This document shows, in pieces, positions 46,476-64,000 of a stretch of DNA of 64,000 nt. The DNA is taken from contig JAPMXV010000020.1 of assembly GCA_026936335.1 (NCBI GenBank), positions 192,128-256,127 of the forward strand, written 5' to 3'. A program made the position numbers and the translations under genes. Within the stretch, counting starts at the first letter, position 1. The number at the start of each line of letters is the position of its first letter. The stretch is from Mantamonas sphyraenae STR306. Its lineage: Eukaryota > Protista > CRuMs. A model generated the notes under the pieces. The model saw only the letters and a program-made list of their open reading frames with translations. It did no database searches and was not told where the DNA came from.

Positions 46476-46625
46476 GGGTGGGGGGAGGTGGTGGTGTGGT
46501 TGGGGCAGCGGGTGGAGGCAGCGGGGTGATGAATGGCGTTGTTGGGAAATACGATGTGGCTTGTGGTGCTCTGTTGACACGTGTGGATGCAGGGTGACGG
46601 TGGTGGTGGTCGTGGGGGGTGCGCA

Positions 46626-49600
46626 ATGGGGTTCAAGAAAATTATGTGGGCGCGGCAGGTTGTTGGGGTGGTTGTCGTCGCTCTCGTGGTGTGTTGCGCA
46701 CGCGTGTCGGCGTCGTGTGAGCAGGAGAAACAGATGGCGGCAGTCGCACGTGCCCTGGGCCTCCCGGCGCTCGCGGAAGGCACGTGCTTTTGCACGTTTG
46801 GGCCGTGGGAAACGACACTGGCCTGCTCGGGGAAGTACAACGCCTCAGACGCGTGTTGCGGTACCACCGAACCGTCATTGGCTATTACTCTACGCACAGT
46901 GAACATCAGCAAGTCGGGTATTGACGCGCTACAGGCTCTCCCGCGCGTGGAAACGCTCTCGTTGCTGGGCCGTTCCGTCAACGCACTCCCAGAGTGGCTT
47001 TGTGAGCTTGGCAACCTCACCACGCTGATAGTCCGAACCACAGACATCTCGTATATCGCGGATTGTGTCGGAAAGGACATGCCGCTTCTGTCAACACTCA
47101 CTTTGTACGACGCAAGGCTGAGCACAATCCCAGAGCCGCTGACCAAAGCCAGCAAGCTGCAATCACTGGACATGAGCTTCAATCAGCTCCAGAGTATTCC
47201 AGGCACCATTTCGGGGATGTCGTCTTTATCCAGCCTCGTTCTTTCCGAGAACCAGATCGACACTCTGCCGCTGTCGCTTCGAAATCTCACGTCGCTGACA
47301 AGCTTGTACGCGGACAACAACCATTTTACTATGGTGCCAAAGGTCATCTCCTATATGCCGTTTCTTCAGACGCTGGATTTCTCGACGAATCACATCACGT
47401 CACTGGAGAACTTGGCCGTCAATCCGGAAACATCCACACTGCGTTTGCCCTCCAACCAGCTGTCGAAGATTCCAGAGGTTCTGTGCACATGGTCCAAACT
47501 TCAATATTTGGACATCAGTCAGAATGCCATCCAGGATCTACCTTTATGTGCGAGCATGTGGTCGGCCATACAAATCCTGAATCTCGACAGGAACAAGTTT
47601 GCTCGTGTGCCCGACGTCATGCGCACCCTACGCAATCTGACAGAGTTCAACATGGACACGAATTCTCTCCTGGAGCTTCCGACCTGGATAGGTGAATTCA
47701 CAGAGTTGAAATCGCTGTCGGTCGTGGACAATCGAATCACCACTTTACCGGGCGAGTTTTCCGGGTTGAAGAAGCTACGCACGATTGCTGTGGCGAACAA
47801 CAGACTTTTTGGCCTACCGGACTCGATTTGCATGTTGCCGAGTCTGTGGTCGATGGACGTGTCTCAGAACAGGCTCTCGTCCTGGCCAGCGCACTGCTTC
47901 GACCATACGCCCGTGCTGCAGTTCCTCATCGCGAACAACAACCATTTCACAGAGCTGCCTGCGAGCATGGCCAACGCGAGCAGGCTCACAAGCATCACCT
48001 TCTCCCACAACCAGGCACGCGAGTTGCCCGAGTTTTTGGCGCAGCTGCCACTTTCGTACTTGGACGTCGGGTACAACCAACTGCGCGAGCTTCCGCCTTG
48101 GCTCGCAAACTTGACATCCATGCAGTATCTGGACGTCTCATTCAACCCGATTGAGGGCGGTGTGCCCGAGTCGTGGGCTGCTCTGACACAGATCACGACC
48201 CTGGGGTTGTCGGGCCTCGGGTTGGAAGCATTGCCTGGTTTTGTGACAGAGCTATCCATCGTGAGAGAACTGTTTGTGTCATCCAACAGGTTGACCTCTC
48301 TGCCTGACCAGCTGGGTGACCTCGCACAGCTTTCCACCGTCGTCGCTGAAAACAACCGGCTGACCTCAATTCCCACGTCACTGGTCAATCTCAAGCTGCT
48401 GTTTCGTCTGGATGTGAGCAACAACTCGCTTTCGGCGTTGCCCAAGTTCACACTGCTGCAGTACCTCCTGTTCCTTGATTTGTCCCAGAACTGCTTTCGC
48501 GAGTTGCCCGCCGACCTCGGGGTGGTCATGCCCAATATGGACATGTTGGATGTGTCCAAGAACAAGCTGACTGTGCTCCCAGATTCGCTGTCAAGGATGT
48601 GGCGCCTGAAGAAGCTGATTGTCACCGACAACATGCTGAAGGATCTGCCAGATCTGTCCTCGCTGACCTTCCTGGATTCACTGTGGTTCAGCAACAACAA
48701 TATCAAGGAACTCCCACGTCTCTCGACAGAATCTGTGCTCCAAGCGCTCTTTGCGTCGAACAATCAGCTGCAAGTGCTGCCAAACTCGCTTTGGACCGTC
48801 AAGGCGATCACCACGGTGCATCTGGACGGAAACGAGCTCACTGGACTTCCAGAACACATTGAGCGGGCAACCCAACTGCGTACCTTGCATGTACAGCGCA
48901 ACAACTTGACAGCGCTGCCACCCGGATTGTGCAACGCCACAAACTTGGTGAACCTGGATGCATCGTTCAACACGATTGCCGCGTTGCACGGTGATTGGTC
49001 ATCCATGACCAAGCTGCAGCAGCTGGCGTTGAACAACAATGTGCTGGGCACAGACGTTGTGGCGCGTCTGATGCGCATTCCGTCGCTCATCTCGCTCGAC
49101 CTGAGCCACAACAGGCTGCGTGGAGTCATGCCGGCACTTCCGGAACACAGTTTCCCGGCGCTCTCTTCTCTGGCCTTGAACGACAATGGGCTATCTGGGC
49201 CCGTACCGGGCGAGTGGCTGCAGCTGCCGTCGCTGCGGTCGCTGCAACTTGAGCGCAATCAGCTCAGCAGCGTCTTGGCAACTACTGTGTTTGTCTACAA
49301 CGAATACGTGACACAGTCGCGTCTGGAGAGGCTGGTTATGCATCATAACGCGCTCACGGCGATGCCAGACGGCCTGCGGTCGTGGGAGACGCTCACTCAC
49401 CTTGACCTCCATGCGAACCAGATTCGGGGCGCGGTTGACTTTTCAAGTTTGCCGCCCAATCTGGTGTACTTGGATGCGTCGCAGAATGCAGTGAGCTCGG
49501 TGGCGCTGGATAGCGTGCTGGGCACACGCACGCTGGCGCTCGAGTTCATTGATTTGTCGCAAAACGAAAACATGGTCGGCTCCGTTTCGGACGCCGAGTT

Positions 49601-51533
49601 TCCGTCGCTGGAGCAGTTTCTCGTGTACGACACGCGCGTGAGCGGAACGATGGACTCGTGGAAATCGGTCGGCCGACTTCAGCGCTTGGACATTCACAAC
49701 ACACACGTGTCTGGCGGCTTTCCACACACGTTTCGGGAGACCACAAACCTGTGGTATGTGGATGTTCGCAACACGGACATGGACTTGTCGCGCGGGGAGA
49801 CAAGCTTTCTGCAGGCGTCACCGACGCAGAGTATTGCGTTTGGCAACGTGTCATGCCCGGTGTTGCTGACGCAGAACAGGCCGCTGCACTTTTTCTACCT
49901 GCCGAGCAACTGGATCGAGCAGTGCCGGTGCGCAAATGGGTTCTTTGGGCGCAAGGAGCGTTGTTTGCCGTGTGCAGAAGACTTTGCCGACTGTCAATGC
50001 AAGCAAGGACGCATCCGTGGTTGCCGTGTGGTGGCTGCGCCCAATGCCACGCAAGACTTTCTGGCTGTGCTTCCATGCCCTGTGCCGGCAGCTTGCTCGG
50101 ACATCCAGCAAGACAACACCCCTGGCGCGGTAGACCAGGCATTGGCATGTGGCCAGGGCTATGCCAACGGCTCTCGTCTGTGCAGCGAATGTGCACAGGG
50201 ATTCTTCAAGTCGGGGCGCGTGTGTGAAGAGTGCCCAGGCCCGGTGGAGATTGCGCTCACGGTGCTGCTGTACGCAGTCCTTCTCGGAATGTTTGGCATA
50301 ACCGTGTATCAACGGAAACTGTACCGTGGTGGCGAAGAGGCGACGATGAAGATTGTGCTCTTCTTCTGGCAGATCCTGGCCACAATCGAGCAGTCGTCGA
50401 TCAGCTTGAAGACGGCATTGCACCGTGTGCACACACAGCAGCATGCGTCGTGGTTGCACGTGGTTGTCTCTCAAGCCATGGTACTTGTGCATCGCGTGGC
50501 TTCGAGCATCAACCTGTCCATCGCTGCGGTGCAATGTCTTTTTGCGCCTCCTGCAGGCTTCAGCGAGCGATGGGAGGCCGAGTTTTACACAAGCAACACC
50601 ATGATTGTGCCTGTGGTTGTGATTGTGGGAGTTGGGTCCCTGTGTTGGAGAGCATGGCACCGATACAGGCGACGTGGGCACCACTTGCTGCAAGAAGAGG
50701 ACGAGGTTGTGGCCACGCGCCTGCAGACTCTGGCAGGCATGCTGCTGTTTGCACTTCATGTGGCCTATGGACCCATTTTGCTGCAGTCACTGAGCTTTTT
50801 GGCGTGCACAGACTCGATCACCGGAGTTGGGAACGAACAGGGATGGGTCTACCTCAACCAGTTTCCGTTCCTGTTGTGCCACGGCGGAGAATCGCGGGAA
50901 CTACTGGGTGTGCAGAGCACCGCGTGGGTTTTGCTTGTTGTGGTGGGTCTGGGTCTGCCCTTGCTGGACGCGGTGGCCTTGTGGTGGATAGGGCGACAAG
51001 ACGCAGCGGATGAACCGTGGGCGCAGACCGTGTTTGGCTTCCTCTACGCGTCGTACAAGCGCGACTATATGGCGTACGAACTGGTGGTCATGCTTCGGCG
51101 CGCTCTCGTGACCGTGCTCGTCACAGCCGTGCCGTTCTACGCGCAGCTGACCTTCTTTGTGCTGTTGTTCCTGGTGCTCGTTTCATCCACCTGGTTCCAC
51201 TCGCGCTCCCAACCATTTGTTCGTGACTTGGACAACCGCATGGAAACCTTGAGTCTGTACACGCTGCAGACGGTGTTTGTGACGGGCGCTGCAGTGACAT
51301 TGAGTCGCACACGGTTTGACAATGCCGCGGTGGACGTGCTCGCGCTGGGCGTGGTGTTGATAACAGCGGCGGTGGGGATGTTGCTGTTGGTGGCCATGGC
51401 ATCCAAGGCAGTGTCGAAGGCTGGGGATCGTTTGGCCGGAGCTGCACGGACCGCCTGGAGGGGATTCCAGAGCGAGGGACGTGGACGCGGGGTGAAGATG
51501 GGGAATCTGAAAAACTCGTTGTTGGGGAGGTGA
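46626..51533 (+). CDS. Large LRR receptor-like protein: signal peptide, ~35 LRRs, Cys-rich linker, ~7-TM domain
   Basis: Hydrophobic N-terminus, LxxLxxLDxSxNxLxxLP repeats at 46.9-49.8 kb, CGQGY...LCSECAQGFF Cys-rich module, and a TM bundle with FGFLYASYKRDY..YELVVMLRR and QPF...DNRME. Confidence 0.88.
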   Translation: MGFKKIMWARQVVGVVVVALVVCCARVSASCEQEKQMAAVARALGLPALAEGTCFCTFGPWETTLACSGKYNASDACCGTTEPSLAITLRTVNISKSGIDALQALPRVETLSLLGRSVNALPEWLCELGNLTTLIVRTTDISYIADCVGKDMPLLSTLTLYDARLSTIPEPLTKASKLQSLDMSFNQLQSIPGTISGMSSLSSLVLSENQIDTLPLSLRNLTSLTSLYADNNHFTMVPKVISYMPFLQTLDFSTNHITSLENLAVNPETSTLRLPSNQLSKIPEVLCTWSKLQYLDISQNAIQDLPLCASMWSAIQILNLDRNKFARVPDVMRTLRNLTEFNMDTNSLLELPTWIGEFTELKSLSVVDNRITTLPGEFSGLKKLRTIAVANNRLFGLPDSICMLPSLWSMDVSQNRLSSWPAHCFDHTPVLQFLIANNNHFTELPASMANASRLTSITFSHNQARELPEFLAQLPLSYLDVGYNQLRELPPWLANLTSMQYLDVSFNPIEGGVPESWAALTQITTLGLSGLGLEALPGFVTELSIVRELFVSSNRLTSLPDQLGDLAQLSTVVAENNRLTSIPTSLVNLKLLFRLDVSNNSLSALPKFTLLQYLLFLDLSQNCFRELPADLGVVMPNMDMLDVSKNKLTVLPDSLSRMWRLKKLIVTDNMLKDLPDLSSLTFLDSLWFSNNNIKELPRLSTESVLQALFASNNQLQVLPNSLWTVKAITTVHLDGNELTGLPEHIERATQLRTLHVQRNNLTALPPGLCNATNLVNLDASFNTIAALHGDWSSMTKLQQLALNNNVLGTDVVARLMRIPSLISLDLSHNRLRGVMPALPEHSFPALSSLALNDNGLSGPVPGEWLQLPSLRSLQLERNQLSSVLATTVFVYNEYVTQSRLERLVMHHNALTAMPDGLRSWETLTHLDLHANQIRGAVDFSSLPPNLVYLDASQNAVSSVALDSVLGTRTLALEFIDLSQNENMVGSVSDAEFPSLEQFLVYDTRVSGTMDSWKSVGRLQRLDIHNTHVSGGFPHTFRETTNLWYVDVRNTDMDLSRGETSFLQASPTQSIAFGNVSCPVLLTQNRPLHFFYLPSNWIEQCRCANGFFGRKERCLPCAEDFADCQCKQGRIRGCRVVAAPNATQDFLAVLPCPVPAACSDIQQDNTPGAVDQALACGQGYANGSRLCSECAQGFFKSGRVCEECPGPVEIALTVLLYAVLLGMFGITVYQRKLYRGGEEATMKIVLFFWQILATIEQSSISLKTALHRVHTQQHASWLHVVVSQAMVLVHRVASSINLSIAAVQCLFAPPAGFSERWEAEFYTSNTMIVPVVVIVGVGSLCWRAWHRYRRRGHHLLQEEDEVVATRLQTLAGMLLFALHVAYGPILLQSLSFLACTDSITGVGNEQGWVYLNQFPFLLCHGGESRELLGVQSTAWVLLVVVGLGLPLLDAVALWWIGRQDAADEPWAQTVFGFLYASYKRDYMAYELVVMLRRALVTVLVTAVPFYAQLTFFVLLFLVLVSSTWFHSRSQPFVRDLDNRMETLSLYTLQTVFVTGAAVTLSRTRFDNAAVDVLALGVVLITAAVGMLLLVAMASKAVSKAGDRLAGAARTAWRGFQSEGRGRGVKMGNLKNSLLGR

Positions 51534-51582: not shown

Positions 51583-52086
51583 TCATTCGAGGCGCTGGCG
51601 TTTGGAGGAGGAGGAGGAGGAGGAGGAGGAGGAAGGGGCTTTGCGCTTGGGCAGGGTGAAGGAGGGGATGGGGTAGGCGTTGACGAGTGCGGAGGTGGTC
51701 GGACGGGTGGTGGTGTGGGGTGTGATGCGGTCGATGAGGGTGTGGAGGAGGGTGTGCAGTGTGGCGTCGCTGGGTTTGGGGTTGTCGAGCCAGGCGATCT
51801 TGAGGGAGAGGGAGGTGACGCCGCGGGCGAGTGTGTTCTTGATGGTACCTTGCACCTGCTTGTAGGTGAGGCGTGGTCTGAGGAGGCGGAGAAAGAAGGC
51901 CAGGTCGACAGGCGGCACGCCAACGTTGCCCAGCGCCAGGATGATGTGTCGCACCAGGGAATTCAGGCTGCCGTTGTTGATCAGCTCACGCAGTGCCTGG
52001 TGCTCGTGTGAATGCTGATGGCGAGGGTGCATGGCTGCACAAGGGCAGCACCCTTGCATCAGCTGAACAAATTGTCCCCATTTCAT
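51583..52086 (-). pseudogene. 5'-truncated third copy of the subtelomeric repeat-domain gene; possibly a translated 167-aa mini-ORF
   Basis: 51583 to ~52038 is nearly identical to the 3' ends of the genes at 56033 and 59905 (ALRELINNG...KRQRLE). Homology stops ~45 bp from the stop codon of the upstream effector gene. Confidence 0.7.
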
Positions 52087-55000
52087 TCAACCTCCACCAC
52101 CACCACCTCCTCATCATATTCTTCACGCGAGGGTGCCCCCCGGAAACTGGCAGATGACCCAACATCGGAATGCTCATCGTTCCCTGTCACCGGAAACTCG
52201 ATGTTGGACAGAGGTCCCAACGCATTGTCACCAAAGAATCCCCTCAACTGCTCGTACCCGACCACAAACAGACCGCACATCTTGACTGTCACTCCCCCCT
52301 GCACCACCGCCGTGTGCTGCCACTCCGCCAACTCTTTCTGCAGATCCCGATGGATGTGGTTCATCCCCATGTTGGCCACGAGTGGTTTGTGTCGGGGTTC
52401 TGTGTTCAGAGCCATCACAGCATCCATCATCGCCATTTTCAGAGCCTCTCCAAACGAGAGTGCTTGGTGTTTCCCGGTTGTCGTCACAATGCCCAGAACA
52501 ACGCTGATCTGCGTTGCCCCCATGCGACGTCCAAGCTGCGCAATCTGCTCCCTGGCCGAGTCCACCTTGAGAAACTCATCCCAACAGTGGAGCTCATTCA
52601 ATGAAGTGCTCTGTGCGTAGTGCTTGCACTGGATACACTCCATCAGCAGATGGTCCTGGTCTCCAGCAACTTGAAAAAACGTGAAAACATCTGCAAAGGG
52701 CGCACCCCTTCCGTTGATGTACACACGATTGACTTGCGGCTGTGTAGATTTGAACGCATCTTTGACATACCTTGTTTCACCTTCTTTCATCTTTTTCAGA
52801 CTGGCTTTCATCTTGTCAATGTGAATATCGTCGACCTCAGCTTCCATCTTGTCGACCTCGGCTTCCATCTTGTCGACCTCGGCTTCCATCTTGTCGACCT
52901 CGATTTGCTTCGTGTCATAATCGCTGCCCCGAGGGAATCGGTGCTTCATCGCCACCGGGATGAGGTAATCGCCACCCAGATTCGTTCTGATTTGAAAATC
53001 AGCCGTTCTGAGTGGCACGCTTGCCCCGCTATTCCAAATTTTCCAGTACGGCATTGTCCCGTTCTCATTGCACCGGTACTGACCCAGGTACAGCTTGAGG
53101 GCCACAAACTTGGCACAAAATTCTTCAAACCCGGGCCCGTCACGGAGCACAACAGAGTCCATGTGCCAAGTGCGTGTCCAGTCGGTCGTCAACGCCACCA
53201 AGGTCCCGTCCACACTGAAACAGCCACCTCGCTTGGTGACAAGCCCATTGTTTTCAGCATCTGGGTGCTCTTTCTCCAGCTCATTCAGGGGCAGGTTGAA
53301 CAGCTCCCCGGAAAGCAGTTTGTTTGAGTTGTCTTCGTCGAAGGATGAGTGCCACTTCCTGGCGAGACTTTTGATGGCATCTTGCGCCAATCTCCGGAGG
53401 TCATCATGCTGATCACGTTCCAGAGCTTCCTTGAACTCGGCGTTGTTCTTCTTTGCCCGATTGCAAAATCGAATCATTGCCAGCGGAGACCCACCAAGCA
53501 TGACGGACAGGCGGTTGCACTTATCCAAATCGATGTCAATGCTGAGAGCTGTGGCCAACTGCTGGAACATGGCACCAGTGAACCACTTCATGTGGAAAGG
53601 GAAATCCCCTCCTCCGCTTGATTTCACAGCCTGCTGCTTGGCAGCATGCACCAAGCCAGCGACTGCAAAAACAAGCCTGTAGTTCAATACTTGGTGGACG
53701 CCCGAAAGCTTGTCCGTGATGATCTTCAGTGCATGTTCCTTTTCCTGTCCAACTTTCGTCTCGCGCAGTTCCTGGCTCTCGTCAATGGTCACCAGCACCC
53801 ACGCGTCCTCGACACCTAGTTTCTCCAAACCCACGGTGACGACATCTTCAATGCAGATCCGGTACTGCTGCAGCACCTTGTTCGCAAGTGAACTCGTGAG
53901 CACCTTGGTGGTTGTCCAGCCCATGAGCATTCGCAGGGCAAAAATCGTCTCCAGCTCATCTATGGATCGGTTGCTTTCGGTTGTGGCACTGTTTCCGCAG
54001 TTGTACGTCACGTGGAACACAAGCACGGACTTCTTCAGCACAGTCTCAAGCACCGACGGAAGCTCAAGCAGAAGTCGCGTTTTCCCCGATCCAGGCACAG
54101 TGACCGCAGAAAACACACCCATCCGCGGTTCCCGCAGGTCATTCTTATTCATGCTCAGGAAGTGGCGGAACTGCCTCTCGTAGTCATCCCGCCCAATCCA
54201 CTCCTTGGTAGGCGATTCCAGCAGTCCGAGAGTCCCTGCCCATGGGCGAACAAAATCATCACGCAATTCCATTCCCAGTTCCTCCAACATGCGTTTCATG
54301 TCCACGAACGTGGTCAGTACTGTGCGCTCTGTTCATGTGGAATGTGCAATCAGCAAGAAGACGCAGGGCCGGTGTGAGCGCTCCTGCGCTGACGTGCCTG
54401 GCGTGACACCCTCCCACGACCACCACACACTCACCTCCCCATTTCTCTTGTGCGTTGCTCGCCCCTCGCCCAGTTTCTGTAGCCGTGGTGAGTGGTAGTG
54501 GCGTGTGAGTGGGCCGGGGACTGCACCAGCAAAGGATGCTGACGCGTGCTGGATGAGTGGGTCCCACGCACGACCTACCTGGTCGTTTCCCATTGCCACC
54601 TTCAGTGAAACGTGTTGATGGCCCTTCTGTGTGCGTGGAGTGCATCAGAACCGGTGTGAGCGTGTGGGTGATCACGCTTCCGGGCCAATTCCGCCCAATT
54701 CGCTGACGTGACACCCTCCTACACCCACCACACACTCACCTCCCCAATCCCCTTGTACGTTGCTCGCTCCTCGTCCAGCTCCTGTGGCCGTGGTGGGTCG
54801 TGGCGGCGTGTGAGAGGGCCGGGATAGTGCTGGGCACAGGGAAAATGGAACTCACCTGGTGCGGTATGATGCTGGCTCTGGGGAGTGTTTCCCAGTTGGT
54901 GCTTGTGTACCCTCTTCCTCAGATCATTCACGATCCCGGAAATGGTCAGCACTTCTTGTGCTGCGGCGTTCGCCAGCGTTTCTGCCCTCGTGCATGCATT

Positions 55001-55894
55001 CTCTGCACGTTTCACACGACCTTGCAGTCTCTGCTCATTTGGAGACTCCTCCAGGGCAGTGTACGCATTGTTCAGCTCCGTCTCAGCACTCGCCAGCTTC
55101 GTCTCAGCACTCGCCAGCTCCGTCTTGGCACTTGCCAGCATCGTCTCACCTTTCAGCAACTCATCTCTCTCTCCATCGTTTGTGTTGTTCGCCCCTCGCC
55201 CAGTTTCTGTGTTCGGGGTGGGTCATCATGGCGTGTGAGAGGGGCGGAAGGTGCTCGTTTACGTAGCAAGGGATGACTGGGTCCCTCGCACGACCTACCT
55301 GCTCCTTTCCCTTGCTGAGACTCAGTGGAACCCGTTGAAGACCCCACTGTGTGCGTGGAGAGCATCAGAACCGGTGTGACGGGTGAGTGATCACGCTTCC
55401 CGCCAATTCGGCCCATTCCGCTGACGTGTCTGACGTGACGCCCTCCCACGACCACCACACACTCACCTCCACCTCCATCTTGTGTGTTGTTCGCCCCTCG
55501 CCTAGTTCCTGTGTTCGGGGTGGGTCATGATGGCGTGTGAGAGGCTGGGCGGATTCGAGCAATCAGGAAAACTCGGCAATCAGGAAACTCAGCAATCATC
55601 AGGAAAACCGCAATCAGGAAAACTCGGCCAACGAGGCCCGAACAACGTACTGATGGCATCAAAGGGCTCGCCTTCTTGGATGAGAGATGCACTTTGCAAC
55701 TTCTCAACTGTGGTGTCGTTGGCCAGGAAAATCTCTTGCCATTCCAACCTGACCAATTCCACCTCTTCGCCCGTTTCCACCTTGTACATTTGGGCCACAG
55801 ATTTCAGAATGTGCCCCACCGTCATTCCCTTCACCGTCGACACCTCGAAGAAGCGGTCCTCGACTTTGACACTGACGACGGCAGGCATCGACAT
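52083..55894 (-). CDS. Crinkler/RHS(CR)-type effector: Ubl-like header, microexon linker, coiled coil, P-loop NTPase, PD-(D/E)xK nuclease fold; exons 55894-55651, 55508-55467, 55346-55299, 55206-54856, 54781-54740, 54626-54579, 54476-54435, 54328-52083 (1020 aa)
   Basis: Walker A PGSGKTRLL, TYNCG, Walker B VLVTIDESQ, REase-like NGRGAPFADVF...IQCKHY, and ubiquitin-like VSVKVEDRFFEV...MTVGHIL...LANDTTV. Seven GT-AG introns, all phase 1, give an open 3063-nt frame. Confidence 0.8.
52828..52900 (-). repeat. In-frame 21-bp tandem repeat (EAEVDKM, about 3 copies) in the CR effector
   Basis: GCTTCCATCTTGTCGACCTC units repeated on the + strand. Confidence 0.9.
54390..55540. repeat. Tandemly duplicated intron-exon units carrying 42-nt and 48-nt microexons
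   Basis: Recurring blocks CACCACACACTCACCTCC, GCCCCTCGCC, GCATCAGAACCGGTGTGA, CACGACCTACCTG and GGCGTGTGAG at a period of roughly 260-300 bp, interrupted once by the coiled-coil exon. Confidence 0.85.
55559..55627. repeat. Intronic minisatellite, ~17-bp unit in 4 copies (GCAATCAGGAAAACTCG)
   Basis: Four adjacent, slightly degenerate copies in intron 1 of the CR effector. Confidence 0.85.
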
Positions 55895-56032
55895 AGTAGG
55901 TCTGTGCACGCAGGCGCAACGACCCGATTGTCGTTGTTGTCGGCGGGGCGAAGAAGATGGACTTGATCGGAGGTGGGAAGGTTGGGTGGGGAGGGGAGGG
56001 TGGGCTGGAGGCTTTGCATGTGAATGGGTGGT

Positions 56033-59000
56033 TCATTCAAGGCGTTGGCGTTTGGAGGAGGAGGAGGAGGAGGAAGGGTCTTTGCGCTTGGGCAGGGTGA
56101 ACGAGGGGATGGGGTAGGCGTTGACGGCATCGACGGTGGTGGGACGGGTGGTGATGTGGGGTGTGATGCGGTCGATGAGGGTGTGGAGGAGGGTGTGCAG
56201 TGTGGCGTCGCTGGGTTGGGGGTTGTCGAGCCAGGCGATCTTGAGGGAGAGGGAGGTGACGCCGCGGGTGAGGGTGGCGCTGATGGCACCAACCACCTGC
56301 TTGTAGGTGAGGCGTGGCCTGAGGAGGCGGACAAAGAAGGCCAGGTCGACAGGCGGCACGCTAATGTTGCCCAGCGCCAGGATGATGTGTCGCACCAGGG
56401 AGTTCAGATTGCCGGTGTTGATCAGCTCATGCAGTGCCTGGAGCTCGTGTGTGTGCTGATGGCGAGGGTGCTTGGCTGCGCGTGTCTTCATGTGTGCCAG
56501 CAGCGTCTGGAACTCCCGCGCCGTGCAGCTGCTACGCTCGTCGCCGTGATTAGCAATGTTCCAGCCGCTGCGCACGGACTCAGGGTGCCAATTGTCCACC
56601 ATGGTGGTGGTGAGTTGGTGGTCGTAGTCGCATTGTGTCCAGTGTGGGTCGCTGTCGTTGTCAGCAGGGCGTCGTGCTTTCTGCAGCCACAGCTGGGTCT
56701 CCTTGTGCTCCTTCCAGGTGGTGGGATGGGGCCTGGCACCCAGAGTGTCCATCTCTGTGATCAGCAGGTGGAGGAGGGCGTAGTTGGGGTCGCCGTGGTC
56801 GTGTGGTTCCTCCAGCCAGCACACCTTCGACCCAGCCTTCGTCACACCCATGGCCAGACCAGCGTTACTGATGGATTTTCTGCACTCCTGTTGATCCACT
56901 TCACGGCCGAGGAGGGTGAGGCAGAAGGCCATGTCGCCCTGGGAGAGGGGAATGTTGCCCAGAACGAGCTGAATCTGTCGGACCAGCGTGTTCAGGGTGC
57001 CATGGCAGATCACAACACGCGCCTGCAGGCTCATGAGGTCAGGGATGTCGTCGATGGGATGCTCGTTGGCCAGGTTGTGCATGTGGTTCAGCAGTTCCGT
57101 GTGCTCCTTCTTGTTGCTGTGACTGCGCTCGCTCTTGCGCCAGGACGTCCAGCCACTGCGCATAACGCCATCTGGCAGTCCATCCTCCACAGCCAGCATC
57201 TCCTCCTCTGTAGGCTCGTGCAGAACAAGCTCGGGGATGTCGAGGGTGTTGACGGCGTCGCATGTGATGGGACGGGTGGTGATGTGGGGTGTGATGCGGT
57301 CGATGAGGGTGTGGAGGAGGGTGTGCAGTGTGGCGTCGCTGGGTTTGGGGTTGTCGAGCCAGGTGATCTTGAGGGAAAGGGAGGTGACGCCACGAGTGAG
57401 GGTGGCGCTGATGGCAGTCACGACCTGCAGGTAGGTGATGTGTGGCCTGAGGAGGCGGACAAAGAAGGCCAGGTCGACAGGCGGCACGCCAACGTTGCCC
57501 AGCGCCAGGATGATGTGTCGCACCAGGGAATTCATGCTGCCGTTTTTGACCAGTTCACGCAGTGCCTGGTGCTCGTGTGAGTGCTGATGGCGAGGGTGCT
57601 TGGCTGCGCGTGCCTTCATGTGTGCCAGCAGCGTCCGGAACTCCCGCGTCGTGCAGCTGCCACGCTCGTCGTTGGGATTGTGCGTTGCCCAGCCACTGCG
57701 CACAGATTCAGAATGCCACGCGTCCACCTTGTTGGTGGTGAGGTGGTGGTCGTAGTCGCATTGTGTCCAGTGTGGGTCGCTGTCGTTGTCAGCAGGGCGT
57801 CGTGCTTTCTGCAGCCACAGCTGAGTTTTCTCGTGCTCCTTCCAGGTGGTGGGATGAGGTCTGTTGCCGAGAGTGTCCAACTCTGCCATGAGCAGGTGGA
57901 GGAGGGCGTAGTTGGGGTCGCCGTGGTCGTGTGGCTCCTCCAGCCAGCACACCTTCAACCCAGCCTTTGTCACACCCATGTCCAGACCAGCGTTGTTGAT
58001 GGCAGTTCTGCACGTGCGTTGATCCATGTCACGGCCGAGAAGGGTAAGGCAGAAGGCCATATCTCCCTGGGAGAGGGGAATGTTGCCCAGAGCGAGCTGA
58101 ATCTGTCGGACCAGCGTCAACAGGGTGCCATGGCAGACCACAACACGCGCCTGCTGGGTCATGAGGTCGGGGATGTCGTCGAGGGGATGCTCGTTGGCCA
58201 GAGTGTGCATGTGCTTCAGCAGTGCCGTGTGCTCCTTCTTGTTGCTGCGGCTACGCTCGTCACAGTATCCAATTGTCCACCCTTTGCGCTCAACACCATC
58301 TGGTAACTTGTTCGTCATGTTCACGCCTGCTTTCTTCCCTGCGCCGGTGTCTCCGTTCTTGGCCCTCCTTGCCCGTGTGCTCGACGTTCCTGTCTCGGTG
58401 CCACTGCCAGCCGTGACCCTGCGCCTGCGCTGTCCGCTGCCTTTCGTCTGTTGTGAAACAGTACGTCGGCTGTTGTGGTCTCTGCCTCGTCTGTGGCCTC
58501 GACTTGTGCGTCTCGGCTGCCACTCGTCCAAGTCCTCCTGTTCCATGTCGTCTGTGTCATCGTCGCTGTCGTCTTGCGGCATGTACTCCTCATCCATGGC
58601 ATCACCAGTGCCTGCAAAGCTGAGTGTACCCTGAGTTTCCACCTCGTCGTCCACGTGCTGCTGGGTTGCGTCGTTTGCCTCTCCATCTTTTTCGTACGCC
58701 TCCATCCCTGAGCTGGTCATCCACTCTGAGTTGCTGGAGATTGAACGTGGTTCACGATGGCAAAAGTTCAGGAGCATCAGGTCCTCCACGTCGCCAGTGT
58801 CATGTGTGCGTGTGTCCTGGTCTGCGTCGTCGTCGTCGCTGTCTCCAGTCTGCCGTGTGGCCTGGTGGGAGGAGGACGACGATGTGGTGGTGGATGTGGT
58901 CCGTGTGATGCCGACAAACGCAGGGCTGATGCGTTTGGGGACGCGGTTGTGGTTGATGGTGGGTTGAGCAGGCGGAGGGTGCGACGGAGTCTGAGCGAAG

Positions 59001-59606
59001 TGCATCTGGGCGGTTTGTCGCGGCTGAGGAGGCGGCGGAGGAGGGTAGGCGTAGTATGGGTGGCTCTGATGAGCATATGTGTAGTGCTGCTGAGGGTAGG
59101 TGTTGACAGGGACCCAGATGATGGGTGGTTGTGGGTGCTGGTACGGGTTTTGTACGCCTGAAACGGGCAGCATGTTCGGAAACGGCTGGGCAGCCACGGG
59201 AGGGACCATGTACGCGTAGCTGTGGGGGGAGACGGGGAGGGGCAGGGCGGAGTGGGACTGGTGAGCAGAAGGCGGAACGGACGCCGTCAGAGCAGAAGCG
59301 GGGGTGAAGGGAGGCTGGAACGAGCAGGGAGGGAAAAGATGGAAGGAGGGAGGCAGACGCGGAAACTGGCCACGGGGAGGGCAGTGACAGGGGAGAGGGA
59401 ATCGGAGAAGAGCGGAGAAGGCAGCGACGGTGGTAATGGGGATGTGCAGATGCAGGGAAGGAGGGCAGGGAAGCGACGCAGGCATGGAGGAGGCAAGCAA
59501 GCGGGAGAAGCGGGCAGTCAGAAAACGGAGTGGAAGGCAGAACGCACGCTGTGTAGGTGTTGGGTGTGTGTTGTTGCTTGGGAGTGCTTGAGTAGTCTTT
59601 GTCCAT
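56033..59606 (-). CDS. Subtelomeric repeat-domain protein, copy 2 (exons 59606-59548 and 59219-56033); four copies of an unrecognised helical domain
   Basis: Phase-2 GTGCGT...CAG intron conserved with copy 1; P/Q/H-rich, acidic and basic N-terminus, A-B-A-B domain array, KRQRLE terminus. Confidence 0.8.
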
Positions 59607-59700
59607 GATTGTGGTGGTGGTAGTGGAGTGTAAGTGGATTGTATTGGACTGGTGGAGGGTGTTGTGGGTGTTGGTGACGTTTTGGTTGAAGGCGGATGGG

Positions 59701-59874
59701 TGGGGTGCACAGGTGTACGAGGCTAAAGAGACGGGGTTGGTGATGAACGGGGAGGAGGGGGAGGCAATGTTTGGGTGTGGTAGGATGGAGGAGTATGAAC
59801 CGACTGCACAGTGGATGACACTGCCGGAGGAGGAGATGGAGAGGGTGGTTGGGTGGGTGGGGAGGGGAGGGTGA
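59701..59874 (+). pseudogene. 3' fragment of an LRR/ankyrin-family gene carrying only the C-terminal F-box/SOCS-like motif
   Basis: ETGLVMNGEEGEAMFGCGRMEEYEPTAQWMTLPEEEMERVVGWV* aligns with ELALLINTTERDIMFTVGSMDAYTPTALWMTLPDELIHRILSFI from the gene at 44421. Confidence 0.75.
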
Positions 59875-59904
59875 GTGGGAAGGGTGTGGGAATGAAAGGG
59901 TGGT

Positions 59905-62900
59905 TCATTCGAGGCGTTGGCGTTTGGAGGAGGAGGAGGAGGAGGAGGAGGAGGAGGAGGAGGAGGAGGAAGGGTCTTTGCGCTTGGGCAGGGTGAAGGA
60001 GGGGATGGGGTAGGCGTCGACGAGTGCAGGGGTGGTGGGACGGGTGGTGATGTGGGGTGTGATGCGGTCGATGAGGGTGTGCAGGAGGGTGTGCAGTGTG
60101 GCGTCGCTGGGTTTGGGTTTGTCGAGCCAGGCGATCTTGAGGGAGAGGGAGGTGACGCCACGGGTGAGGGATTTGCTGATGGCACTTTGCACCTGCAGGC
60201 TGGTGAGTCGTGGTCTGAGGAGGCGGACAAAGAAGGCCAGGTCGACAGGCGGCACGCCAACGTTGCCCAGCGCCAGGTTGATGTGTCGCACAAGGGACAG
60301 CAGGTTGCCGTTGTTGATCAACTCACGCAGTGCCTGGTTCTCATTTGCGTGCTGATGGCGAGGGTGCTTGGCTGCGCGTGCCTTCATGTGTGCCAGCAGC
60401 GTCTGGAACTCCCGCGCCGTGCAGCTACCACGCTCGTCGCCGAGACCGTTGGTCCAGCCACTCCGCACAGACTCAGGATGCCACTTTTCCACCTCGGTGG
60501 TAGCGAGATGGTGGTCGTAGTCGCATTGTGTCCAGTGTGGGTCGCTGTCGTTGTCAGCAGGGCGTCGTGCCTCGTGCAGCCACAGCTGGGTCTGCTTGTG
60601 CTCCTTCCAGGTGGTGGGATGGGGCCTGTCGCCGAGGGTGTCCATTTCTGTCATGATGAGGTGGCGGAGGGCGTAGTTGGGGTCGCCGTGGTCGTGTGGC
60701 TCCTCCAGCCAGCACACCTTCAACCCAGCCTTTGTCACACCCCTGGCCAGACCAGCGTGAGGGATGGCAAGGCTGCACGCCTGTTGATCCATGTCACGGC
60801 CGAGAAGGGTGAGGCAGAAGGCCATGTCGCCCTGGGAGAGGGGAATGTTGCCCAGAGCGAGCTGAATCTGTCGGACGAGCGTCAACAGGGTGCCATGACA
60901 GACCACAACACGCGCTTGCAGGGTCATGAGGTCTGGGATGTCGTCGATGGGATGCTCGTTGGCCAGGGTGTGCATGTGGTTCAGCAGTGCCGTGTGCTCC
61001 TTCTTGTTGCTGTGCATGCGCTCGCTCTTGCGCCACTTTGTCCAGCCACTGCGCACGACGCCATCTGGCAGTCCATCCTCCACGGCCATCAATTCCTCCT
61101 CTGTGGGCTCTGGAAGAACAAGCTCGGGGAAATCGAGGGCGTTGACGGAGTCGACGGTGGTGGGGCGTGTGGTGATATGGGGTGTGATGCGGTCGATGAG
61201 GGTGTGGAGGAGGGTGTGCAGTGTGGCGTCGCTGGGTTGGGGGTTGTCGAGCCAGGCGATCTTGAGGGAGAGGGAGGTGACGCCACGGGTGAGGGTGGCG
61301 CTGATGGCATGTTGAACCTGCTGGTAGGTGAGGTGGGGCCGGAGTAGGCGGGCAAAGAAGGCCAGGTCGACAGGTGGCACGCCAACGTTGCCCAGCGCCA
61401 GGATGATGTGTCGCAGCAGGGACTGCTTGCTGCCGTTGTTGATCAGCTCACGCAGTGCATGGTTCTCGTATGTGTGCTTATGGTGAGGGTGTTTGGCTGC
61501 GCGTGCCTTCATGTGTGCCAGCAGCGTCTGGAATTCCCGCGCCGTGCAGCTGCCTCGCTCGTCGCTGGGATTGGCTCTGCTCCAACCTCTGCGCACAGAC
61601 TCAGGATGCCATTTTCCCACCTCGGTGGTGATGAGGTGGTGGTCGTAGTCGCATTGTGTCCAGTGTGATTCGCTGTCGTTGTCAGCAGGCCGTCGTGCTT
61701 CCTGCAACCACAGCTGGGTCTCCTTGTGCTCCTTCCACGTGGTGGGATGGGTCCTGTCGCCGAGAGTGTCCATCTCTGCCATGAGCAGGTGGAGGAGGGC
61801 GTAAATGGGGTCGCCGTGGTCGTGTGGCTCCTCCAGCCAGCACACCTTCAACCCAGTCTTTGTCACACCCACGGCCAAACCAGCGTTGATGATGGCAGTG
61901 CTGCACGCATGTTGATCCATATCACGGCTGAGAAGAGTAAGGAAGAAGGCCATGTCGCCCTGGGAGAGGGGAATGTTGCCCAGAGCGAGATGAATCTGTC
62001 GGACCAGCGTGTTCGTGGAGCCATGGCAGACCGCAACACGCGCCTGCTGGGTCATGAGGTCGGGGATGTCGTCGATGGGATGCTCGTTTGCCAGATTGTG
62101 CATGTGGTTCAGCAGTGCCGTGTGCTCCTTCTTGTTGCTGCGGCTGCGCTCTTCACTGCGCCAGTTATGCGACCATCCTTTGCGCACAACCACAACTGGC
62201 AACTTGTTCGTCTTGTCCACGCTTGCTTTCTTCCGTGCACCGTTGTCTCCGTTCTTGGCCCACCTTGCCCGTGTGCTCGACGTTCCTGTCTCTGTGCCGC
62301 TGCCAGCCGTGACCCTGCGCCTGCGCTGTCCGCTGCCTTCCATCTTCTGTGGACCAGCATGACGGCTGATGTGGCCTCTGGGCCAATGTGCGCTGCCTCT
62401 ACTTGTGTGTCTCGGCTGCCATTCGTCCCTGTCCTCCTGCTCTATGTCGTCTGTGTCGTTGTCGCTGTCATCTTGCGGCATGTACTCCTCCTCCATGGCA
62501 TCACCAGTGTCTGCATAGCTGAGTGCACCCTGAGTTTCCAACTCGTCGTCCACGTGCTGCGGGGTTGCGTCGTTTGCCTCGCCGTCTTCTTCGTACGCCT
62601 CCATCCATGAGCTGGTCGTCATCCACTCTGAGTTGCTGGAGATTGTTCGTCGTTCACGGTGGCCAAAGTTCAGGAACATCAGGTCTTCCACGTCGCCGGT
62701 GTCTTGTGTGTGTGTGTCCTGGTATGCGTCGTCGTCGTCGTCGTTGTCTCCAGTCTGCCGTGTGCCCTGATGGGAGGAGGACGACGATGTGGTGGTGGAT
62801 GTGGTCCGTGTGATGCCGACAAACGCAGGGCTGATGCGTTTTGGGACGCGGTTGTGGTTTCCGGTGGGTTGAGCAGGCGGAGGTTTCAACGGAGGCTGAG

Positions 62901-63505
62901 CAAAGTGCACCTGGGCGGTTTGTCGCGGCTGAGGAGGCGGCGGAGGAGGGTAGGCGTAGTATGGGTGGCCCTGATGAGCATATGCGTGCTGCTGCTGCGG
63001 GTGGGTGTTGACAGGGACCCAGATGATGGGTGGTGGTGGGTGGTGGTACGGGTTTTGTACGCCAGAGACGGGCAGCATGTTCGGAAACGGCTGGGCAGCC
63101 ATGGGAGAGACCATGTACGTATAGCTGTGGGGAAGATGGGAGGGGCAGGGCGGGGTGGCAACGGTGAGCGGAAGGCGGAATGGCCGCCGTCAGGGCAGAA
63201 GCGGGGTGAAGGGAGGCTGGAGCGAGCAAAGAGGGAAAACGGAGGAGATTGGCAGACGCGGAAACTGGCAACGGGGAGGGCAGTGAAAGGGGAGAGGGGA
63301 TCGGAGAAGAGCGGAGAAGGCAGCAGCGGTGGTGACGGGGAAGTGGAGATGCAGGGGAGGAGTGCAGGGAAGCGACGGAAGCATGGAGGAGGCAAGGAAG
63401 CGGGAGAAGCGGGCAGCCAGAAAACGGAGTGGAAGGCAGAACGCACGCTGGGTAGGTGTTGGGTGTGGGTTGTTGCTTCGGAGTGCTTGAGTAGTCTTTG
63501 TCCAT
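59905..63505 (-). CDS. Subtelomeric repeat-domain protein, copy 1 (exons 63505-63447 and 63124-59905)
   Basis: Same structure as copy 2; MDKDYSSTPKQQ exon 1, CTCAC branch motif, in-frame splice, A-B-A-B domain array. Confidence 0.8.
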
Positions 63506-63778
63506 GGTGGTGGTGGTGGTAGTGGAGTGTATGTGGATTGTGTTGGACTGGTGGAGGAAGTTGTGGGTGTTTGTGATATTTTGGTTGAAGGCGGATGGGC
63601 AGTGCTGACTGCGCGTCGTTGCAGGACAACGGCCACTCACTAGCGACATTTCCACTGCCATCTATTGCTCACTGCCCCATATCACCACCCAACTCAGCCA
63701 CCCCGCCAGCAGACACAAGCACAACTCACATGACCTAGACCGGACTCAAATATTTACCACTCTGAGTTGCAGGAGTTT

Positions 63779-64000
63779 GGGTTAGGGTTAGGGTTAGGGT
63801 TAGGGTTAGGGTTAGGGTTAGGGTTAGGGTTAGGGTTAGGGTTAGGGTTAGGGTTAGGGTTAGGGTTAGGGTTAGGGTTAGGGTTAGGGTTAGGGTTAGG
63901 GTTAGGGTTAGGTTAGGGTTAGGGTTAGGGTTAGGGTTAGGGTTAGGGTTAGGGTTAGGGTTAGGGTTAGGGTTAGGGTTAGGGTTAGGGTTAGGGTTAG
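63779..64000 (+). repeat. Telomere (TTAGGG)n, right chromosome end
   Basis: Tandem TTAGGG to the window end with the G-rich strand running 5' to 3' outward; a TTTGGG variant at the junction and one TTAGG variant at ~63908. Confidence 0.99.

Follow-up and report, generated by a model that had tools for sequence, protein, structure and literature searches.

Near the right-hand telomere of contig C20 of the free-living bacterivore Mantamonas sphyraenae STR306 (CRuMs), a gene predicted to encode an NTPase-nuclease effector lies between two copies of a telomere-adjacent repeat gene, one full and one truncated. The window analysed here is a stretch of 64,000 nucleotides (nt) from that contig (JAPMXV010000020.1), positions 192,128 to 256,127 of the forward strand. 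The reading we favour, at a probability of about 0.6, is that this gene specifies an NTP-gated conflict nuclease of a Mantamonas-restricted family with the architecture of Crinkler/RHS (CR) effectors, copied between chromosome ends by way of homology arms that the repeat genes provide. Inward of the telomere the minus strand carries all four units concerned, namely repeat gene D, repeat gene C, the effector gene and a repeat-gene remnant, in the order and common orientation that an earlier, sequence-only reading of this DNA had given. In the proposed mechanism, the protein would act in biological conflict, either in defence or as an effector, with its NTPase and middle region controlling or targeting the nuclease. 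The full and 5′-truncated repeat-gene flanks would serve as homology arms through which gene conversion or break-induced replication could copy the effector cassette from end to end, which would make the repeat genes the vehicle of its spread and not its antidote.

The effector gene is predicted to have eight exons (55894-52083, minus strand), and its spliced model of 3060 nt amounts to exactly 1020 codons and closes in frame. All seven introns are GT-AG and phase 1, and no exon contains a stop in the required phase. Most of the coding sequence lies in a 740-codon open reading frame (ORF; 52083-54305), by whose codons residues are numbered below, and the short ORFs before it join through canonical splice sites. 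Five mini-exons of 42 or 48 nt, encoding Gly/Asn-rich linkers, flank a 351-nt coiled-coil exon on both sides, and form part of a repeated unit of intron plus mini-exon that is present only in the three copies of what we call subfamily 1. The predicted protein of ~1020 amino acids (aa) would thus run from a small header through mini-exon linkers and a coiled coil to a STAND/AAA-like P-loop NTPase, and from there through a variable helical middle region to a C-terminal nuclease of the PD-(D/E)xK type. This is the domain order that the sequence-only reading had put forward, and it held up: header, coiled coil, P-loop NTPase and PD-(D/E)xK-like motif follow one another as proposed. The coiled-coil parts contain two separate 21-nt tandem repeats, each unit encoding seven residues (52825-52929 and 55052-55156); at the former, copy-number changes among three chromosome ends are always in frame.

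The 81-aa header exon is conserved in all three subfamily-1 copies and has a paralogue on contig C49 (40% identity), in which both the codon position of the exon end and the phase-1 donor A|GTACGTT are the same. Since position and phase of the donor agree, the paralogue supports the splice site of effector exon 1. The C49 gene (~466.1-467.8 kb, on a contig that reaches at least 597.8 kb) runs on into exons with collinear sub-threshold matches to CHAT, a caspase-like family, and the same header may therefore serve a protease-type effector as well. Pfam matches of the C49 header paralogue itself were likewise sub-threshold only, and included USP7_C2 and Par3_HAL_N_term. The second effector subfamily has a coiled-coil header instead (in the C69 copy the first exon is a coiled coil, followed by a phase-1 intron), and no similarity was found between the header and the N-termini of M. 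plastica homologues. Hence headers and C-terminal domains are combined in different ways, as is typical of CR proteins.

A phmmer search of 1.84 billion representative sequences returned four matches to the effector: two to the coiled coil only and two full-length at ~22-24% identity, both of the latter being transcripts of Mantamonas plastica. Viral and metagenome scans yielded no effector relatives, and across all databases searched the family is limited to Mantamonas. A profile of the homologues uncovered a second, diverged effector subfamily in the same genome, so that the census stands at 12 copies and one fragment; besides the three subfamily-1 copies there are nine diverged paralogues and the fragment, which is a piece of 61 residues only (C58:4185-4367). 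Where the contig end is known, the copies lie ~4-17 kb from it and all are subtelomeric (Table 1). One subfamily-2b copy, C6:371144-373159 on the plus strand, is directed toward the telomere, opposite to all others, which hints at an inversion or at a local history unlike that of the others.

Across deep effector pairs, dN/dS (the ratio of nonsynonymous to synonymous divergence) is 0.31-0.52. Because these older pairs are constrained and the M. plastica homologues are expressed, sequence comparison indicates that the effector family is living, with fast-evolving regions as expected of conflict genes. The nuclease core has the lowest ratio of nonsynonymous to synonymous polymorphism (pN/pS) in the effector, together with a few other segments that are also constrained, while in parts of the NTPase and of the helical middle region pN is at or above pS.

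Conserved residues were read from a family alignment of 13 sequences in three clades, which share 21-25% identity with one another and include the expressed M. plastica proteins. The glycines and lysine of Walker A and the acidic residues and glutamine of Walker B are invariant (Table 1). Pfam families AAA_16, AAA_19 or AAA_22 gave weak matches in 6-7 of the 13 members, all below the Pfam cut-offs, and a PDB search returned weak matches to ORC1 and ADR1 that support the P-loop. On these motifs and weak AAA and PDB matches the NTPase assignment is sound, and its place after the header is that of the NTPase in CR proteins.

The nuclease assignment is plausible, and draws on the motif, the strand order in low-confidence structure models, the constraint and the language-model neighbours of subfamily 2. 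The motif, A-x-F-A-D-V ... D ... E-C-x-Q-C-K, is fully or almost fully conserved: in addition to the invariant motif residues listed in Table 1, the columns N531, A535, F537, A538, V540 and D551 are invariant, and 12 of the 13 members have Q559 and K561. ORF residues 541-600, which include most of the nuclease-like motif, have not a single nucleotide change among the three subfamily-1 copies. AlphaFold2 models of the 740-aa ORF, alone and with a 7-sequence alignment, both place the motif on consecutive strands followed by a helix and a strand and make the middle region (ORF residues ~240-460) helical, at mean confidence (pLDDT) of only 34 and 33. In the ESM Atlas, neighbours of subfamily 2 include clusters that pair an NTPase with Hjc or Mrr (Mrr_cat) nuclease domains (0.88-0.89). 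Among the paralogues, the subfamily-2b copy at the left end of C69 has Q and K of the motif swapped (E-C-I-K-C-Q), and may have an inactive or altered active site.

The repeat genes belong to a family that lies beside most telomeres. A tblastn search of the genome found at least 38 full-length members at 82-89% identity, nearly all of them 800-1000 nt from a contig end and directed away from the telomere, with open frames of 1080 to 1281 aa. Genes C and D share 81% amino acid identity, and gene C corresponds to the one repeat gene that C8 and C11 each have at their end. The N-terminal third of the protein is of low complexity, with Pro/Gln-rich, acidic and basic stretches in D; it is followed by four related helical modules, A1-B1-A2-B2, with a landmark period (super-repeat) of ~375 aa, and by a C-terminal tail with KRK...KRQR that resembles a nuclear localisation signal. 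A Pfam scan of the repeat protein matched no family. A start of gene D further upstream, at 63505, had been suggested previously; the upstream extension is open in some family members only, and we use the start given in Table 1.

The fourth unit, formerly taken for a separate small gene with a single domain, proved to be what remains of a repeat gene's last module; it starts inside the module, ~45 nt past the effector stop. Its reading frame in the window differs from that at C8 and C11, and the C11 remnant contains two compensating frameshifts and has lost the KRK motif. An ATG-initiated ORF of ~165 aa covers the module at all three subfamily-1 loci. From their sequence, the truncated repeat-gene copies downstream of effectors look like pseudogenes.

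The arrangement of full gene, effector and truncated gene is recurrent in the effector family. Nearly all effector copies with visible flanks adjoin repeat-family sequence on the same strand, and a truncated repeat gene follows 45-85 nt past the effector at 9 of 10 loci with a visible flank, the C71 copy being the only one without such a fragment downstream. At five subfamily-2 loci the truncated gene lies within 67-85 nt downstream; it starts at residue 627/1002 in subfamily 2a, where the spacer resembles a decayed continuation of the module, and at residue 613/988 in subfamily 2b. The upstream context is known for C69, C8, C11 and the window, and at C69, too, a full repeat gene ends upstream of the effector. 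In the window, direct repeats of the repeat-gene 3′ end stand on both sides of the effector-specific segment (52042-55979, 3.9 kb), and on its upstream side effector-specific DNA starts 15-55 nt past the stop of the full gene C. Within each subfamily one junction and one context are common to all copies. Linkage in the other direction does not hold: at least 35 chromosome ends have a repeat gene and no effector. The test that the sequence-only reading had proposed, for co-occurrence of the two families across the assembly, thus has a one-way outcome: it holds from the effector side, where repeat sequence is almost always adjacent, and not from the repeat side.

The same reading had supposed spread by subtelomeric exchange, and this is borne out by three near-identical blocks and by a 12-copy family that is subtelomeric wherever the ends are known. 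Gene C, effector and remnant are found again as a block at the chromosome ends C8, with 97% identity, and C11, with 93%, and the sequence common to the three ends breaks off where the remnant has its 3′ end. Compared with C8, the window has 0-4 differences per 300 nt from the effector through the 3′ two-thirds of gene C; the differences then climb to 10-15 and further to 34-67 per 300 nt toward the 5′ end of gene C, and the remnants differ by 5%. Compared with C11, divergence is 3.5% in the effector ORF, ~10% in gene C and 7% in the remnant. Low divergence over the effector with higher divergence in both repeat-gene flanks fits the role of the flanks as homology arms for exchange between ends. 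Moreover, patches of 13 shared differences within the remnant resemble conversion tracts. Gene D, the distal repeat gene, is additional in the window and has only 89% DNA identity to the C8 copy; it was probably gained at the window end, beyond the block common to the three ends.

Several results weigh against the favoured reading. Subfamily-1 copies differ by 1-3.5% with dN/dS near 1, and their introns are not more diverged than their exons; being so little diverged they are too young for selection to show current function. Not all family members are intact: the C71 copy (~5.3-7.6 kb) is divided into two ORFs by a frameshift, and C34:728637-730511 has one in-frame TGA. The divergence gradient could reflect faster conversion of the flanks by other repeat-family members instead of cassette transfer. 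Pfam scans of the ORF, of each exon piece of the spliced model and of the 13 family members matched no nuclease and no Crinkler family, and PDB searches with single sequences and alignment profiles gave only weak P-loop matches and none for a nuclease fold; the low pLDDT of both AlphaFold2 models belongs here as well. For the header exon there was no Pfam family at E<=10, and a PDB profile search with four header sequences returned nothing relevant. The sequence-only reading had called the gene CR-type. Its architecture, motifs and language-model neighbours agree with that name: in the ESM Atlas, neighbours of both subfamilies include clusters of "Crinkler family protein" (0.95, with 205-207 shared features), which we treat as a lead only. 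Homology searches do not extend the agreement; the Crinkler header profile PF20147 found nothing in the header exon or in the whole genome (control genomes were also silent), and HMMER searches gave no link from the effector family to known CR proteins. Three word-based searches came back blank as well, one of which missed proteins of its own alignment, perhaps through low-complexity words crowding the candidates.

It is the missing matches of the C-terminal region to nuclease families in HMM, PDB and Pfam searches that leave room for a STAND/AAA-type NTPase with a C-terminal domain of another kind, for example a signalling or scaffold ATPase in which D...ExxQxK is a lineage-specific structural or binding motif. 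A Q in place of the classical D or E, and the swap of Q and K in the C69 paralogue, point the same way. We consider this unlikely, given that D539, E556 and K561 are conserved across clades of 21-25% identity, that pN/pS is at its lowest in the motif region, that both structure models, for all their low confidence, give the order strand-strand-strand-helix-strand, and that Hjc and Mrr_cat domains occur among the language-model neighbours.

The topology of the locus, exactly that of full gene, insert and displaced 3′ fragment, would also be expected of a self-propagating element whose nuclease cuts the last module of the telomere-adjacent gene, and whose repair copies in a replacement 3′ end together with the effector, so that the host gene is restored and the displaced 3′ fragment is left behind. 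If the nuclease did cut the module, the cassette would amount to a gene drive powered by its own nuclease and acting between the chromosome ends of a deep-branching eukaryote. At least two distinct junctions occur, each of them in a B module (residue 914 in the subfamily of the window and 613/627, equivalent to 988/1002, in the other), and a transposon origin has been suggested for CR NTPase-nuclease modules (Zhang et al., 2016, as cited in PMC5289972). Self-comparison revealed neither terminal inverted repeats nor a target-site duplication at 52042 or 55979, as a transposon or homing element might have left. Potential targets number more than 45, of which only 12 are occupied, and the single junction per subfamily gives no sign of repeated independent insertion. 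Furthermore, gene C was duplicated along with the effector between the window and C8, which plain recombination explains; the required cleavage specificity would be hypothetical, and nothing specific speaks for such an element. It is distinctly improbable, and we see about as slim a chance that the cassette is, more broadly, either carried along selfishly by telomere repair or active in the manner of a homing element.

Least of all does the present evidence favour a toxin-antidote or immunity pair, in which the repeat protein or its single-module fragment would neutralise the nuclease and the two would spread together as a selfish or defence module: the sequence-only reading had proposed such a partner or immunity role, and same-strand adjacency at nearly all effectors, the truncated copy close behind 9 of 10, the ~165-aa module ORF and a nuclear-localisation-like tail that would suit CR effectors acting in the nucleus (PMC5289972) are in its favour, but it is very improbable in view of the many repeat-bearing ends that have no effector, of a downstream copy that is truncated, decaying and read in different frames at different loci (with KRK lost through a double frameshift at C11), of the C71 effector without an adjacent repeat fragment, of M. 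plastica homologues without the repeat module, and of a flanking full copy that is an ordinary member of its family. The two genes are indeed physically linked, yet recombination explains this better than a partner or immunity role does.

The coordinates of the features are collected in Table 1. M. sphyraenae has a published FALCON assembly of 25.06 Mb in 78 contigs, with a GC content of ~59% and TTAGGG ends (PMC10492846), and we found TTAGGG at contig ends genome-wide. A leucine-rich repeat (LRR) gene on the plus strand (46581-51533, a 1650-aa ORF) converges on the cassette and, going inward across the subtelomere boundary, is the first gene specific to this chromosome; its product matches LRR_8 (E=4e-70), has 17 LRR stretches and is hydrophobic in its C-terminal third. 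From 56000 to 64000 the plus strand is G-rich (GC skew +0.19 to +0.33) despite the long genes on the minus strand, so that the repeat genes are coded on the C-rich strand. This composition gives rise to many long antisense ORFs, such as 56024-57580 on the plus strand, which are probably not genes.

Table 1. Features of the window (positions in nt from its first letter) and chromosome ends that carry copies of the effector.
Feature	Position or chromosome end	Strand	Basis
Telomere, TTAGGG repeats to contig end	63778..64000	+	Repeat sequence; right end of contig C20
Repeat gene D, 1069 aa	CDS 59905..63114	-	ORF; landmark repeats; comparison with family
Repeat gene C, 1058 aa (from the Met equivalent to the D start)	CDS 56033..59209	-	Comparison with D, C8 and C11
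Direct-repeat partner of the remnant, 3′ end of gene C	56021..56490	-	Self-comparison
Effector exon 1, 81-aa header, proposed ubiquitin-like	55651..55894	-	Kept in three copies; C49 paralogue donor
Effector mini-exon, 42 nt, phase 1-1, Gly/Asn-rich linker	55467..55508	-	Splice model
Effector mini-exon, 48 nt, phase 1-1	55299..55346	-	Splice model
Effector coiled-coil exon, 351 nt, phase 1-1, internal 21-nt repeat	54856..55206	-	Splice model; self-comparison
Effector mini-exon, 42 nt, phase 1-1	54740..54781	-	Splice model
Effector mini-exon, 48 nt, phase 1-1	54579..54626	-	Splice model
Effector mini-exon, 42 nt, phase 1-1	54435..54476	-	Splice model
Effector last exon including stop: predicted P-loop NTPase, helical middle, heptad repeat, nuclease-like C-terminal domain	52083..54328	-	ORF; alignment
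Walker A, P-G-S-G-K-T	54078..54098	-	G72, G74, K75 invariant in 13 members
Walker B, hydrophobic run then D-E-S-Q	53772..53795	-	D175, E176, Q178 invariant in 13 members
21-nt tandem repeat, 7-residue coiled-coil unit, copy number variable among three loci	52825..52929	-	Self-comparison
PD-(D/E)xK-like core, F-A-D-V strand then M-E-C-I-Q-C-K	52623..52697	-	D539, E556, C557, C560 invariant
Repeat-gene remnant, 5′-truncated; last module, gene-D residue 914 to stop	51583..52040	-	Alignment to gene D
Effector subfamily 1	C20 right, C8 left, C11 left		
Effector subfamily 2a	C17 left, C12 right, C17 right, C30 left, C71 left		
Effector subfamily 2b	C72 right, C69 left, C34 right, C6 right		
Effector fragment	C58 left		

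What is new here is the census of two subfamilies, the M. plastica homologues, a predicted eight-exon model that closes, and a header in common with a CHAT-like gene, as well as the finding that effectors repeatedly lie nested between a full telomere-adjacent gene and a truncated one, in a pattern of divergence that fits cassette exchange. If the favoured reading is right, it would extend Crinkler/RHS-like NTPase-nuclease effectors to CRuMs, and to a free-living bacterivore, through a family diverged enough for standard profiles to miss. A telomere-to-telomere assembly shows how such genes can travel between chromosome ends, and the cassette offers a tractable case of subtelomeres building and shuffling their repertoires of conflict genes.

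CR proteins consist of a header plus, most often, an NTPase, a helix-turn-helix (HTH) and a restriction-endonuclease-fold (REase) domain, and their NTPase-nuclease modules have been proposed to be transposon-derived (Zhang et al., 2016, as cited in PMC5289972); those examined to date act within the nucleus (PMC5289972). The predicted protein has the same order of small N-terminal header, P-loop NTPase and C-terminal PD-(D/E)xK-like motif, and the modularity of its header is alike; it belongs, moreover, to a multigene family of a free-living eukaryote. It differs in that its linkers come from symmetric phase-1 mini-exons, its folds are predicted and its family is confined to Mantamonas. The architecture fits CR effectors; sequence similarity to known CR proteins and a PF20147 header were both sought and not found. 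Trypanosome RHS proteins are grouped with Crinklers as CR proteins (PMC5289972). Like the effectors described here, they form a subtelomeric multigene family with an NTP-binding motif and a mixture of intact and broken copies, whereas the neighbour here is an orphan telomere-adjacent gene in place of VSG expression sites; we found no sequence similarity between the effector and trypanosome RHS, and saw no retroelement insertions at the locus.

With respect to its manner of spread, the cassette is closer to other systems. Subtelomeric duplicons and telomere-linked families, such as the Y′ elements of yeast and the telomere-linked helicase genes of fungi, spread by ectopic recombination or break-induced replication. 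As in those families, a gene of one orientation by most telomeres gives homology between ends, the common sequence ends sharply and divergence is mosaic, and the window has what defines a subtelomeric duplicon: blocks common to several ends, bounds within family homology and mosaic divergence. Here, however, the telomere-adjacent gene encodes an orphan four-module protein and not a helicase, and an unrelated effector is nested between its full and truncated copies. Phages and integrative and conjugative elements (ICEs) that integrate in tRNA genes insert in the 3′ end of the gene and bring a replacement 3′ end. Their topology is similar, with an intact gene, an insert and a displaced 3′ fragment as a direct repeat; the locus at this eukaryotic chromosome end differs from them in having neither an integrase nor a short att-like core, and its direct repeats, of ~200 nt to 1.3 kb, are ordinary homology.

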